64,000 nt of DNA, taken from Dicyema japonicum. Its lineage: Eukaryota > Animalia > Dicyemida. The notes under the pieces were generated by a model. That model saw only the letters and a program-made list of their open reading frames with translations, had not been told where the DNA came from and ran no database searches. The stretch is from positions 15,545 through 79,544 of the forward strand of contig RDEW01000046.1 of assembly GCA_011109175.1 (NCBI GenBank), in the 5' to 3' direction. The stretch's first letter is position 1; each line of letters begins with the position of its first letter. This document shows positions 22,355 to 29,389 of this stretch, one piece after another. The position numbers and the translations under genes were made by a program.

Positions 22355-24272
22355 ATGTTCCCTTCAGGACTCAATGATGAACAGAAACAAAGAAGTGAGT
22401 CGAACAGACTCAAAGCATTGGAGAGGTTACATGCCAAACGTCAACACCTGAATATCACAAAGACTACCACTTTTAGTATGAGCACACCAGACAAATATCC
22501 TCAGAACCATATCATTGTTAAATGTGATCTTTCAAAAACTCATATATTGCTGTCTCTATGGTCCGAGGACTCATTCAAGGCTGATTTCGAGTATAATCCT
22601 CACGTAATAGAGCTACTCAAGTCTCAGCCGCATAAGAGATACAGTTTTCTTACACTATTACTATAGATGCTTTTACAAAATGCTGGACATTCTCGATTCA
22701 GCACTACAAGACGATATGTTGCCCAAATTTGTGACAAATAGACAGCAATTTGAAATCTGAGTGTCTTGTGGAGGGAATTCCTATCAAAATAGTCGAAGAG
22801 TTGATCAACAAGTCCGGGACTTCTTTTCCTTGCACTCCTGAATGTCCCCTTTACTCACAACTGATGCCTTTTCAGAGAGAGTCTGTGAAGTTGTTTTTGT
22901 TTTACTTTTTGCCAGGGAATTTGGTAACAGGGGTGGAAGACTGCTTATTTCTGATGAAATGGGACTCGGCAAGACTTTCCAGACAGTCGACATCCTACTC
23001 CACTACAAAGCACACTGGCCTTCTCTTGTTGTGTGCCCTGCCTCTATGAAACACGTATGGCTTGAGGTTGGAGACTATTTTCAGTGGTAGCTTGTGAGGA
23101 AACTCCTTCCTTCAGCCTCTTGCAAACTCGGGACCGAAAAGAACGCCTCTTCGGCAGATATAATCATAATAAATTACGAAATATTGGGGAGAAAAACTGA
23201 GGTCACTAATTTTGGGATTCTTGTGGTCGACGAGTCTCACAATATAAAGAACACGTCGAGTATTCGATCAAAATGTGTCCAGAAAGCGTCCCGACAGGCA
23301 AAATACATCGTCCTTCTCAGCGGTACCCCGGCCCTCTCCAAGCCGAGCGAACTGTACGCCCAACTGAACGTCTTGAGACCAGATTTGTTTAGTAACTTTT
23401 ATGAGTTTGGCATGCGGTACTGCAATGGGAAGAAGGTTTGAAGTTATTATTACTTTTGACTACATGGGGACATGACTTTGGTGGATTATCTAACGAGACT
23501 GAACTCAGGGTCATCCTCAACAGCATCTTCATGATTAGGTGGTCCATAAATTCTAATTTAGACGCCTTAAGGCTGAGATTATCGACCAGCTCCCCATGAA
23601 GGAGCGCTTAAGAGTGGACTTAGACGTTGGAATATCTCAGAAGGAGTTTAAAGTTAAACATAAAATGACTCCCAGAAAAATTACTCAAAGCATCAAGATA
23701 AGGGATCTCTGTTAGAGTTTTTCAGTGAGATGACGATATTGAAGATATTCCATGTTTGGTAGATCAGTTGTATATAAAATAGTGAATATATTATCAAAAA
23801 ATTAAAGATTGTGCACAAACTGGTAATATTTGCCCACCACAAGGTCATGATTGAGTCACTCAGACGTTCACTCACGTGTGTTTGGAGTATTCTTAGTTTT
23901 AGTATTCGATCGTTGTCATTGATGGGTCCACCAGTTCGTTGAGTCGCTATAATTGTATTGATCAGTTCCAAAATGATGAAAACTGTCGAGTTGCTGTGCT
24001 TTCTCTCACGGCTGCCTGTACAGGAATTACATTGACACGTGCGAATAATTTGATTTTTGCTGAGTTGTCCTGGACTCCTGGGATGTTGGTGCAGGCTGAG
24101 GACCGTGTTCACCGAATAGGACAGATCAAACCTGTATTTGTCGAATATTTGGTTGGATTGGGGACTGCAGACGAGATTATCTGGTTTGGGTTTAGGTTAT
24201 TTTAGGCCGATAATCAACAAAAAGCTCGGAATCCTTAACAAAGTTGGCTTCACTGACCTCTCAAAATTATAA
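22355..24272 (+). CDS. SMARCAL1: SMARCAL1 (HARP) annealing helicase, SNF2 family, 11 exons
   Basis: RPA-binding motif LNDEQKQRSESNRLKALER; one HARP domain (FKADFEYN..VIELLK...TKCWTF); SDEMGLGKT, VVDESH, LLSGTPALSKP, IFAHHKVM, IDGST, AELSWTPG..VQAEDRVHRIGQ. Introns 22644-666, 22718-741, 22890-915, 23067-090, 23436-458, 23539-561, 23653-675, 23759-782, 23880-902, 24184-205. Confidence 0.95.
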
Positions 24273-24770
24273 TTTAAAAATTATTTTTCTGTGTGAAGAT
24301 CTCTAATGTGTTGGCTTTCTTAAATCTATAGTCTAGGATGATGTACGTGGTGCTAAGATGAGATAAATTTGAATCTTTGATATCAAGGACCGCGGGATTA
24401 GTTCCCAATTGAATAAAAAGTTAAAATTATTTTTACGAGATGCGTTCAACTTTTTTCACTTCTGCTGCAACGTGTCGGGGTCACGTGATTAGTTATTTGG
24501 ATCCACCGTGATCTTTTGAGTCTTGAATTAAAATTATTTTTAAGACCAATGGTAACCAAACTAACTCCTTGGTCCTGACTCGTTTCAGTAAGGTGGATCC
24601 AATGACACCATCGAAGGGAAGGAAAACAACTAGCCACATAGCGCCACGCGGCCAACTTCATAGTAGAGACCACAGGGAGTCCATAATTACCAAATGTACA
24701 GAGATAATTATTTTCTTGTTTAATTTGAATAACGAATAATAGTTTGTTTCAGGGTGTTAATTGAAAAAAA

Positions 24771-25665
24771 TCATTTATTAAGTTCACCAGCACATTGTCC
24801 TTTATTAAACTCTATAAGCGCAACACCTGAGATGACAATGAGGAAGGAGAATCCTGATCCGACAATATCATGCAAATCCATCTGTTTATAATCTCCAAAA
24901 GAAATTGACGAGGCCGTTGTTACTGCTCAAGTAAACTCCACGTAGTATATGGAGGTTACCAATGAGGTTGGGAAGGAATCCAAAGCCTTGTTGAAAAAGT
25001 TGACTTGTAGGCACAGAGTAGGACCAATAGCAGCACAAATTGATCAAAACAAAGATCTTGACAGTGCATCCAATAAAAATGTAGAGCGAAACAGAAGACC
25101 GAATGATTTTGACAAAATGACAAGCAGAGATCCGAATAGTGAGCAAATTGTAATGTATATTATCGGCGTTTTGTGGCCAAATGAGGGACTGAGGAGATAA
25201 ACGACACCAGAAACAACAACAAATACTATGCAGTACCCAATAAACTGTTGACTCGTCAAAGCGATCTGTATGTTCTCCTCTGATAAAGTGAACGAGTCTT
25301 TGGGACCGAAATATATGATGTAAATGCATCCAGTTATGCAAAGTAGGACTCCAACCTTGGCTAGTTTTGACAATTGTTCACCGAATATGAAGGAGGCGAA
25401 TATAAGGCTTTAATTAAACAATTACAGGATAACCTAAAAAGAAGACTGGCAGAACCAAGGGATGCGACAATTGGGGCAGCTAATTGACTGAGATTAGGAA
25501 AGTTACCCATCTCACCAATCCCCACTAAAATGTCATAAAGGTAATACTAGAGCAAAGACCTGCCCACCAAAACGGAGATTTCAGATATTCGTGTCCTCCG
25601 TTTTCTACGTGTAAAAATAGATTAACTGGCTTTGTTGTTGGTAGAATTTTTTTAAGCACTCCCGG
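24771..25665 (-). pseudogene. NIPA-family Mg2+ transporter with two in-frame TGA codons and no clear 5' start (pseudogene or recoded gene)
   Basis: GGHEYLKSPFWWAGL, GIGEMGNF, PIIYITICSLFGSL, QVNFFNKALDSFPTSLVTSIYYVEFT; introns 25605-626, 25525-547, 25408-433; TGA at 25044-46 and 24927-29; terminal TGA 24771-73; a LINE 3' end lies immediately upstream near 25690. Confidence 0.8.
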
Positions 25666-25689
25666 GAAATCAAAAATTAATTAGATTAA

Positions 25690-28420
25690 TTAAGTTCCCC
25701 TTGTGCCACGTCCAGTATCCTCCCACACATCCTCTTCCATGTTCCCCTGTTCCGGGCCATTGCTCGTAGTGAGTCAAGATCTTCACCATTTCGTAGAGTT
25801 TTGTTTATTCGGATTAGATGCAATCCGTACAAGATTTTCCGGGCCTGAAGCCACATTGTTCCACGAGGAGGTAGCTACTCTCTTCTACATGCCGGTTCAG
25901 CCTCTTGAAGACAATTCGCTCAGCGATCTTGGAGGTCGAGCAAATGAGGCTGATAGGCCTATAGTTGAGAGGGTCCCTCCCTGAATTTCATGGTTCCAGG
26001 ATCATCTTAACTACATAGGTTTTCCAGCTTCTTGGGACATATCCGTGGTCAATGCTTGCGTTGTTCTTTAGTACAAACACGTTCTTTAGTACAAAGAACA
26101 AGGCCTCCGGGCCTTCTTTAAGCATCCTCATGCTAACATGATCATGACAGGAGCATTTGCTTTGCATACTCATGACAGGTAACCACGACCTCCTCTAGTG
26201 TGATTCTCATTTCAACATAATTGAGATCGTTCTGAGAGCAGTTATAAAGTTCTTGTGAAGCCTCCAACTCTTTACATGAGATCAACAACATGGATTGACT
26301 TCTTGGATATGGTCTAGCTGTCTTTTAAAGATTTCCGAGGCTTCTCTTGGAGAGTGCGAGCCCCCTTCCGGTTGTTCAAGATAATCTTCTTTTCATTGTA
26401 CTTCTGGTAAGTTAATTTTTTATAGATTCTCCAGAAAGAGGGATCTTTAGTGTCCAGTTTGCTTGCCTCTATTCTCCATCTTCGCTCCAGAGCCAATCTT
26501 GTTTCCTCTTCGATGACTCTTTTGGTTATCTTTAGTCGATCGGTCAGAGGCATTTGGTCAATCCTGTCAGCGCATCTTCTTATCTTGATTCTCAGACGGT
26601 TTCTTTCTTTGATCAACTCCAAGGTAATGAGTGAAATGTCAATACTCTTTTTGCGGCTAGCATTCGAAAATTTCTTTTGGTATATAGTAGCAAATATCTC
26701 TCTATGACGATTGCGAGATTTCGGTCCATATTATCGATTTCAATCGGTGACTTAGGTTCCTGCGTCCAACTTTGGAGGTTCCTTGTGAGGTAATTTCGCT
26801 AGTGTTCCGATTCAAATCGTGACATGTCCTACATATCTCATGAACACTGCTTCCGTGTCGTCTGGGGTTAGGTGTTGAACTAGTTCCTGAAAAATGTGGT
26901 CACTGCCGATGTCCCACATTATCCTCGGCCTCTCCAAATAGGTGCAAAGCGAGTGTAAGATTAAGAACACATCAAGCATATCTCCTCCGTGGTGAGAGAA
27001 GTGGTTTGGCTCCTCCGACGTCATGATCTCGAATCCGGCTCTCTCACCCAGGATTTCTAGTTTTCGTCCGTCCGCGTTATTTCTGAAGCATCCGTAATTA
27101 ATGTTCTTGGCGTTTAGGTCACCCACCAAATTAGATATATCGATTTTTATCGAAAAAATTATTTCATCAGTGTAGAAGATTTCTTGATGTCTTTGAATAC
27201 ATTCCTCCAACGTGTATCCACGAGCCACAGTAGAGTATCTCAATCAACACAAATTTGCATTGTGTGGCCGTGATTATTTTCGGGTTTCGTGTTCGTAGGT
27301 CATCGCTGTAGAACAACGTGGTTCCAATGCCAGCCGCGGCTATTCTATAGAGTTGAATCTTTCCAGCGTAGTAGTGTTGGTCTTTTCATCTTGGGCTTGT
27401 TGACCACCAGGACGTCAATCCTGGTGGTTGTCAAAAGTAATGCTAGATCATTATGGCCTCTTCCTCAAGGATCGGGCATTCACCAGCACTATCTTCAGAC
27501 CTCTTCTCAATTGTTTTTTAGATGGCCTAGGCTCTCCATCGCCAGGTCCACCATCTTTCGTAAATCCACACCAAAAATTTTGCTCAGTTCTTTTAGCCTT
27601 GAAATTATATCTTCTAGTTCTTTTGAGATCTTTTCTGGCATATCACTTCGAGCTTGCCAAGTCAATTCTCGTGCCTTTCGAACCGGTTCATTGTTAATAA
27701 TTCGGGGGCCGATTGTCATTCTCTTTGTCGGTTTCACTGTTTTGGTGATTATTCTCAGTGGAGTTCCCTTATTGATTTCAATGTTAGTCTTGTCCTTCTG
27801 CCTTGATTCCTTTTTGTTGTTGCAAACATCAAGTTTATGTTTGGCTTCCAATAGCAAGGGGCATCCTCCATATCTGGCCCCGTGTTTGGAAGATCCGCAG
27901 TTAACACAATTGGTTTTTAATCCCGGATCCATATTGTAGTCTGAGATATCATGTTGTCCCGCACATCGGAAACACTTTTTTCTTTCCTTACACTGGTATG
28001 CAAAGTGCCCGACTTGCTGGCAGCTATTGCAGATCAGCGACCCTCTTCTCATCCATTCGCAAATAATCACGTTTCCTCGACAGCATTTGTGGGATTATTG
28101 GTGTGATTATAAACACGTGAAGGTAATGGAGTTTTGTGTTTCCTGAACTTTCACGAGGTTTTAGTTGGATGTGAATAGTTGAACGGATGCATTTTTCTCT
28201 CAAGGAAAGTTGAAATATTTCTCCCTCCATACATATAGAGGAGAGCCAAAAAAAATTTCTTTTTTTCGAATCGGGTGACTGAGGCAACCTTGAGATAAGA
28301 GAATGGTTAAAGTCGTCATCTTCGCAAGCAATGTAAATGATTTTAAATTTTGACGGATTCTGTTCCAACTCAAGTTCTGCAAGTGTAAATATCTACATAT
28401 GCCACCACAATTTTCCAATT
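25690..28420 (-). mobile_element. I/Jockey-group LINE with gag-like ORF1 (three CCHC knuckles) and internally deleted ORF2
   Basis: ORF 27507-28070 CNSCQQVGHFAYQC / CFRCAGQH / CVNCGSSKH; APE motifs VGDLNAKN, GSDH; related copy at 39610-41010. Confidence 0.85.
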
Positions 28421-28880: not shown

Positions 28881-28907
28881 ACTCACCGCAAGACTTTCTG
28901 AAGGCGA

Positions 28908-29252
28908 TCAGTTTGAATGCAAAAAAGGAGTCCTCTGTAGAATCGGAGACTTCAGCCCGAAAATGCGGTCTGTCAGAATCTTTATTGAATTAATGAAGGA
29001 AATCCCCATATCGGAACTTCCGACCATGACCTTCTTATTCACTTCTGTGAATAAACATATTATTATAGGATCTATCGATANGTTTGAATGCAAAAAAGGA
29101 GTCCTCTGTAGAATCGGAGACTTCAGCCCGAAAATGCGGTCTGTCTGAGTCTTTATTGAATTAATGAAGGAAATCCCCATATCGGAACTTCCGACCATGA
29201 CCTTCTTATTCACTTCTGTGAATAAACATATTATTATAGGATCTATCGATAT
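28908..29252 (+). repeat. About 171-bp tandem duplication with an N at the junction (probable assembly artefact)
   Basis: gtttgaatgcaaaaaaggagtcc...gatctatcgata occurs twice, separated by n at 29081. Confidence 0.85.
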
Positions 29253-29389
29253 TTTGACTAAAGCAAAGATGTCAAACATGCGGCCCTCAGGCGGACCTTG
29301 ACAAGCATAAGTGCGGCCCAATTAATGGATATAAAACACAAAAAATCATTTTGTTATTTTTTACATTTAATTAATTTTTAATAGTATTT

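Follow-up and report, generated by a model that had tools for sequence, protein, structure and literature searches.

A coding region of the NIPA (SLC57-type) family, interrupted by two in-frame TGA codons, was found in a 64,000-nt stretch of the Dicyema japonicum genome (contig C318, positions 15545-79544; referred to here as the window). The locus is probably a NIPA gene that was duplicated at the DNA level, was truncated at its 5' end and became inactive recently; on this reading the TGAs are ordinary nonsense lesions, and UGA here means stop. The first-pass annotation had rated pseudogene decay as at least as likely as recoding of UGA; decay is favoured by the loss of the exon carrying the ATG and by the young LINE tail at the break.

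In the history that we propose, the gene for a NIPA membrane transporter would have been duplicated at the DNA level with its introns kept. The 5' end would have been lost together with, or just before, the insertion of a LINE. The first in-frame stop (TGA 1) would be a plain TGG to TGA transition and the second (TGA 2) a small multi-nucleotide lesion. The copy would have been under purifying selection during most of its existence, with young lesions. Since it lacks a start codon and the first helix and contains two stops, it could not yield a NIPA protein with the standard code.

NIPA coding region and its paralog

The genome searched comprised 67,542,437 bases in 377 pieces. In the window the NIPA-family coding region (PF05653, Mg_trans_NIPA) was located at 25648-24771 on the minus strand, in four exons separated by three GT-AG introns (Table 1). 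Separate exon pieces were used as queries for the database searches. The joined coding model, with X at the stops, was used in local scripts only, for alignment and for estimation of dN/dS.

The minus-strand frame 25664-24771 translates to ...SRSLF*SICAAIGPTLCLQVNFFNKAL...YYVEFT*AVTTASSI..., where asterisks are stops. Re-translation bore out the reading given in the first-pass annotation, including the positions of the two TGAs (25046-25044 and 24929-24927) and the lack of a frameshift in the last exon. In the Pfam search, pieces of this exon were colinear with PF05653 over profile positions 89-200, 222-250 and 253-293. The exon pieces scored 67.1 and 29.0 bits against a gathering cut-off of 26.2, and a short upstream piece in another frame matched profile positions 40-60. 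In the genome-wide profile search the locus scored 124.2 bits over profile positions 89-293.

The frame changes upstream are due to three tiny GT-AG introns and not to frameshifts: excision of 22, 23 and 26 nt yields a sequence of exact length that is colinear with the NIPA family. As in the magnesium transporters NIPA1 and NIPA2, the window copy is colinear with PF05653 over positions 40-293 and carries family motifs, here Q-x-N-(F/Y)-x-N-K-A-L-D and YYV-FT. It differs from them in having two internal stops and neither an N-terminal helix nor a start codon, and its NFAAYAFAP motif, like that of the other dicyemid copy, is degenerate. A word search of public collections with a 121-aa exon piece gave no match. 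An exhaustive HMMER search returned 333 NIPA relatives at 40% identity or less, none of them a dicyemid sequence.

Table 1. Features of the NIPA locus and of other loci in the genome. Positions are those of the window unless a contig is named.
Feature	Position	Strand	Remarks
Young LINE 3' tail, 170 bp, 5'-truncated	25648..25817	-	Ends ...GCTTAAAAAAA, adjoins NIPA remnant
Older LINE fragment, start of RT domain	25817..26300	-	74-88% identity to other copies
NIPA exon 1 remnant, 22 nt	25627..25648	-	Starts at codon 37 of the full-length C24 paralog; alignment
GT-AG intron, 22 nt	25605..25626	-	Removal fuses ...NNKA and KNGGHEYLKSPFWWAG in frame; also in C24, 2 mismatches
NIPA exon 2, 57 nt	25548..25604	-	PF05653 profile 40-60; gene model
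GT-AG intron, 23 nt (24 nt in C24 copy)	25525..25547	-	Gene model, C24 alignment
NIPA exon 3, 91 nt	25434..25524	-	Degenerate NFAAYAFAP-type motif
GT-AG intron, 26 nt	25408..25433	-	Colinearity once spliced; kept in C24, 2 mismatches
NIPA exon 4, 637 nt, including terminal TGA 24771-24773	24771..25407	-	PF05653 profile 89-293, three pieces
In-frame TGA 1, codon 178 of remnant model	25044..25046	-	TGG in paralog
In-frame TGA 2, codon 217 of remnant model	24927..24929	-	ACG TTG in paralog, ACT TGA in window
HSP70 gene	C46:606400-606580	-	+1 insertion (GCC-T-TAT), then -1 deletion about 100 nt on
Cytosolic-type HSP70 gene	C73:25840-25935	-	Frame shifted by a single surplus A between ...KGQQQSI and TPEEVSS
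tRNA-Sec, anticodon UCA, 75.7 bits	C223:342051-342137		ARAGORN: tRNA-SeC (tca)

Exactly one other NIPA locus was found in the genome by the profile search, on contig C24. The two copies are about 90% identical over window positions 25657-24768 and nowhere else nearby. They share the terminal TGA, and similarity collapses in the alignment directly after it. The C24 copy opens with an ATG, shares the three introns and comprises 304 codons. Origin of the window copy as a retrocopy was rejected, as each of the tiny introns is still in place at its C24 position.

The C24 copy (minus strand) is itself damaged. It carries an in-frame TAA where the window reads TAC, at a position that is Tyr in 50 of 60 aligned homologs, and a 130-nt tandem duplication (99.2% identical, one mismatch) that disrupts the frame. 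Because of the TAA and the duplication, lesions in the NIPA copies are not specific to TGA. The check for a second intact copy that had been proposed in the first pass therefore gave a divided answer: the C24 copy has the start codon and the TGG but is broken as assembled. The genome as assembled appears, from these two loci, to hold no intact NIPA gene.

Downstream of the NIPA stop, positions 24472-24621 (minus strand) fold better than shuffled sequences (z -2.21), with perfect 10-bp arms UGGAUCCACC/GGUGGAUCCA and no match to an Rfam family. The flank of the C24 copy has 80% identity to an 86-nt stretch which this segment overlaps. Exons of a SNF2-type helicase, with DESHNIKN and LSGTPALSKPSELY motifs, lie at 22355-24205 on the plus strand, running towards the NIPA remnant and facing its 3' end.

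The lost 5' end and the LINE junction

The window copy is without its first 36 codons, that is, the ATG and the first membrane helix; profile positions 1-39 of PF05653 are absent and an in-frame TAA lies directly upstream of the remnant. The missing N-terminal exon was sought in the window by blastn and tblastn and in the whole assembly by a DNA search, and was recovered in the C24 copy only. A position for this exon beyond the LINE or elsewhere was rejected for that reason.

NIPA homology stops exactly where the poly-A of the LINE tail ends. At least 30 copies across the genome, on many contigs, match the tail (25817-25648) at 97-100% identity; they have the end ...GCTTAAAAAAA in common and differ from one another right after the A-run. 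LINE-like ORFs extend to about 28400. The near-identical 3' tails suggest very recent retrotransposition in a reduced genome. A 5' end broken by a LINE, as noted at first reading, is thus upheld by the position at which homology ends.

The junction resembles a LINE insertion with loss of flanking target DNA in its 5'-truncated tail, in the poly-A at the broken exon and in the unrelated sequence on the far side. It differs in that neither a target-site duplication nor a deleted segment was identified, and a mis-join at the repeat is possible.

Selection on the copies and origin of the lesions

Homologs were aligned at the two interrupted codons. In a set of 67 NIPA homologs, the residue aligned with TGA 1 is Tyr in 34, Trp in 19, Leu in 6 and Phe in 3. 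Judged from this column the site is an aromatic one, and the TGG of the sister copy makes it Trp there. The first-pass placement of TGA 1 exactly at a conserved Trp stands as far as the aromatic column and the paralog are concerned, but not for the family, in which Tyr outnumbers Trp. The column of TGA 2 holds T (29) and S (12), and also V or I; the paralog codon TTG is Leu. TGA 2 sits among three differences within 4 nt, for which a -1/+1 indel pair is an equally good reading. The two TGAs have no common amino-acid meaning.

Tiny introns hiding the stops were ruled out. GT-AG and GC-AG spans of 15-90 nt enclosing either TGA were listed, and none was in frame while sparing conserved colinear sequence; the sole in-frame candidates, of 60-90 nt, would each remove such sequence.

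In the joined coding model the window and C24 copies differ at 74 of 807 sites, distributed 16/16/42 over the three codon positions. The values obtained were dS 0.23 and dN 0.056, with a dN/dS of 0.24 (bootstrap 0.15-0.39), and the ratio was 0.23 upstream against 0.25 downstream of TGA 1. Apart from the C24 duplication, no frameshifting indel occurs in the 807 nt. From the ratio of 0.24 it follows that both copies would have been constrained for most of their divergence, and that the lesions are recent or not real. At residues that are among the most conserved of the family, the window copy has Asn for Ala (Ala in 52 of 56) and Ala for Pro (Pro in 48 of 57). Overall, neither copy is closer to the NIPA family than the other.

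The window copy resembles an unprocessed (duplicated) pseudogene in its parental introns, premature stops and lost 5' end, and in having a paralog with the ancestral codons. It differs in being very young, in its dN/dS and lack of frameshifts, and in that its supposed parent on C24 is also damaged as assembled. A ratio that is not relaxed past TGA 1, with no frameshift, is the signature of a constrained gene and speaks against recent inactivation. It is also rather unlikely that two stops and a truncation would be gained so quickly; a stop results from about 4% of random substitutions. In addition, indel errors in HSP70 genes and duplications of the gap-closing type mean that some or all of the lesions could be artefacts.

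A less likely but substantial alternative is that the gene is functional in the animals and that its apparent lesions come from the assembly or from haplotypes. The stops would then be consensus errors or null alleles segregating in the sample, the junction with the young LINE tail would be a mis-join at a high-copy repeat, and exon 1 would lie in a gap. The published assembly (67.5 Mb in 377 scaffolds, mean intron length 38 bp) was produced by merging Platanus (Illumina) and Falcon (PacBio RS II) assemblies, followed by GapCloser and HaploMerger (PMC6736024). The sample consisted of pooled animals, with a heterozygosity of 1.24% and a gap rate of 4.1% (PMC6736024); a pooled heterozygous sample and a merged, gap-closed assembly speak for this explanation.

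Errors of a suitable kind were seen in two highly conserved HSP70 genes, one with a +1/-1 indel pair and one with a +1 insertion (Table 1). The pair on C46 shifts 33 conserved codons (YFNDGQRQATKDAGAIAGL...NEPTA) out of frame and looks like an assembly error. In the window, direct repeats (28905-29087 and 29076-29257; 183 bp, 96.7% identical) lie on either side of a single N at 29081, an arrangement typical of a gap-closing artefact. The C24 duplication is of the same type, and both it and possibly the TGA 2 cluster, with its indel-pair reading, could be artefactual. The dN/dS and the absence of frameshifts also fit a live gene.

Against an artefact, TGA 1 is a substitution, unlike the usual long-read error. 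Two stops arising in an 807-nt ORF by error alone are unlikely, given the small share of random substitutions that lead to a stop. Outside the C24 copy, the assembly does not contain the missing first exon, and the losses at highly conserved residues look real.

Decoding of UGA and significance of the locus

It is very unlikely that the UGAs are decoded in a functional NIPA paralog, whether as Trp by near-cognate or context-dependent reading, as UGG after A-to-I editing, or as Sec. Such decoding would be in keeping with the aromatic position of TGA 1, Trp in the paralog, and with a dN/dS that is not relaxed beyond it. It has to contend with the missing start codon and first helix, and with the T/S/L position of TGA 2.

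The restriction of the stops to TGA was taken in the first pass as a hint of recoding. TGA accounts for about 32% of the one-step nonsense mutations possible in the window NIPA ORF, and the chance that two of two stops are TGA is about 0.1. TGA-only stops are thus within chance expectation. Moreover, the internal stop of the sister copy is TAA, and both copies terminate at TGA, as do MRPL27 and SRRT according to the first-pass annotation.

Reading of UGA as Trp found no clear counterpart in the decoding machinery. tRNA-Trp genes were located using a pattern of the D-arm and anticodon-arm. Only two were found, both with anticodon CCA and a normal 5-bp anticodon stem (TCTGA/TCAGA); neither a tRNA-Trp(UCA) nor a further tRNA-Trp paralog was found in the genome. 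The eRF1 gene (C101) retains GTS, NIKS, RVNRLS and YLCDNKFHTE, with TASNIKS to TATNIKS as its sole change, and its predicted stop-recognition motifs are essentially canonical. Another eRF1_1 match, on C68, was set aside as Pelota.

About 6,000 codons of CCT/HSP60 and HSP70 loci were without an exonic in-frame TGA. All stops inside these matches fell in 21-30 nt in-frame introns or in out-of-frame run-on. The EEVD/KDEL ends of the HSP70 genes were not found within the HSP70 loci examined. The suggestion of context-dependent UGA=Trp is not supported by any of these tests.

One CCT subunit gene (C323, about 1321735, minus strand) contains a 24-nt in-frame GC-AG intron that includes a TAA; tiny introns in the D. 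japonicum genome are therefore not all GT-AG. Phosphoglucose isomerase (PF00342) loci were noted at C1:928752-930409 and C223:789832-790962, with stops, intronic or exonic, within the matches.

Stop codons with ambiguous or reassigned meaning, including UGA=Trp, are found in Condylostoma and Blastocrithidia. The NIPA copy in the window shares with these codes one UGA at a Trp/aromatic position. It differs in that no adaptation of tRNA, no clear one of eRF1 and no UGA in conserved genes was found, TGA 2 is not at a Trp, and UGA is used as terminator. UGA-CUAG is the known read-through context. The stops here stand in UGA-U and UGA-G contexts, so that the next base is never C.

A selenocysteine system is present in the genome, judging from the tRNA-Sec gene (Table 1), which speaks for Sec-type recoding. 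No match to a SECIS element or other RNA family at E<=10 was found in window positions 23000-26500, and folding of the first 150 nt of the NIPA 3' flank was unremarkable (z -0.27). Cys was absent at either TGA column among the residues listed for NIPA homologs. Sec-type recoding, proposed at first reading, is not borne out by these results.

As to editing of UGA to UGI, two loci with an adenosine-deaminase domain (A_deamin), each ADAR or ADAT1, are present in the genome and would be compatible with it. RNA folding around the TGAs was no better than that of shuffled sequences (z 0.61 and -0.59), and no dsRNA-like structure is apparent at either of them.

It is likewise very unlikely that the window copy is expressed, from an upstream start or with a mis-assembled first exon, and that the UGA of codon 178 is read as Trp through editing or near-cognate decoding. 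If true, this would explain purifying selection on both sides of the stop, and would be the first sense UGA in a dicyemid outside selenoproteins.

A young truncated duplicate with nonsense mutations, the explanation that we prefer, is routine and matters little in itself. The wider points concern the genome. Apparent frameshifts in D. japonicum are usually introns of 21-30 nt, and genes should be modelled first and stops called only afterwards. Because the assembly contains duplications of the gap-closing type and, even in HSP70 genes, indel errors, isolated in-frame stops are not evidence of recoding unless they have read support. As assembled, this very reduced parasite has damage in both of its NIPA loci; should the damage be genuine, it is losing this transporter family.
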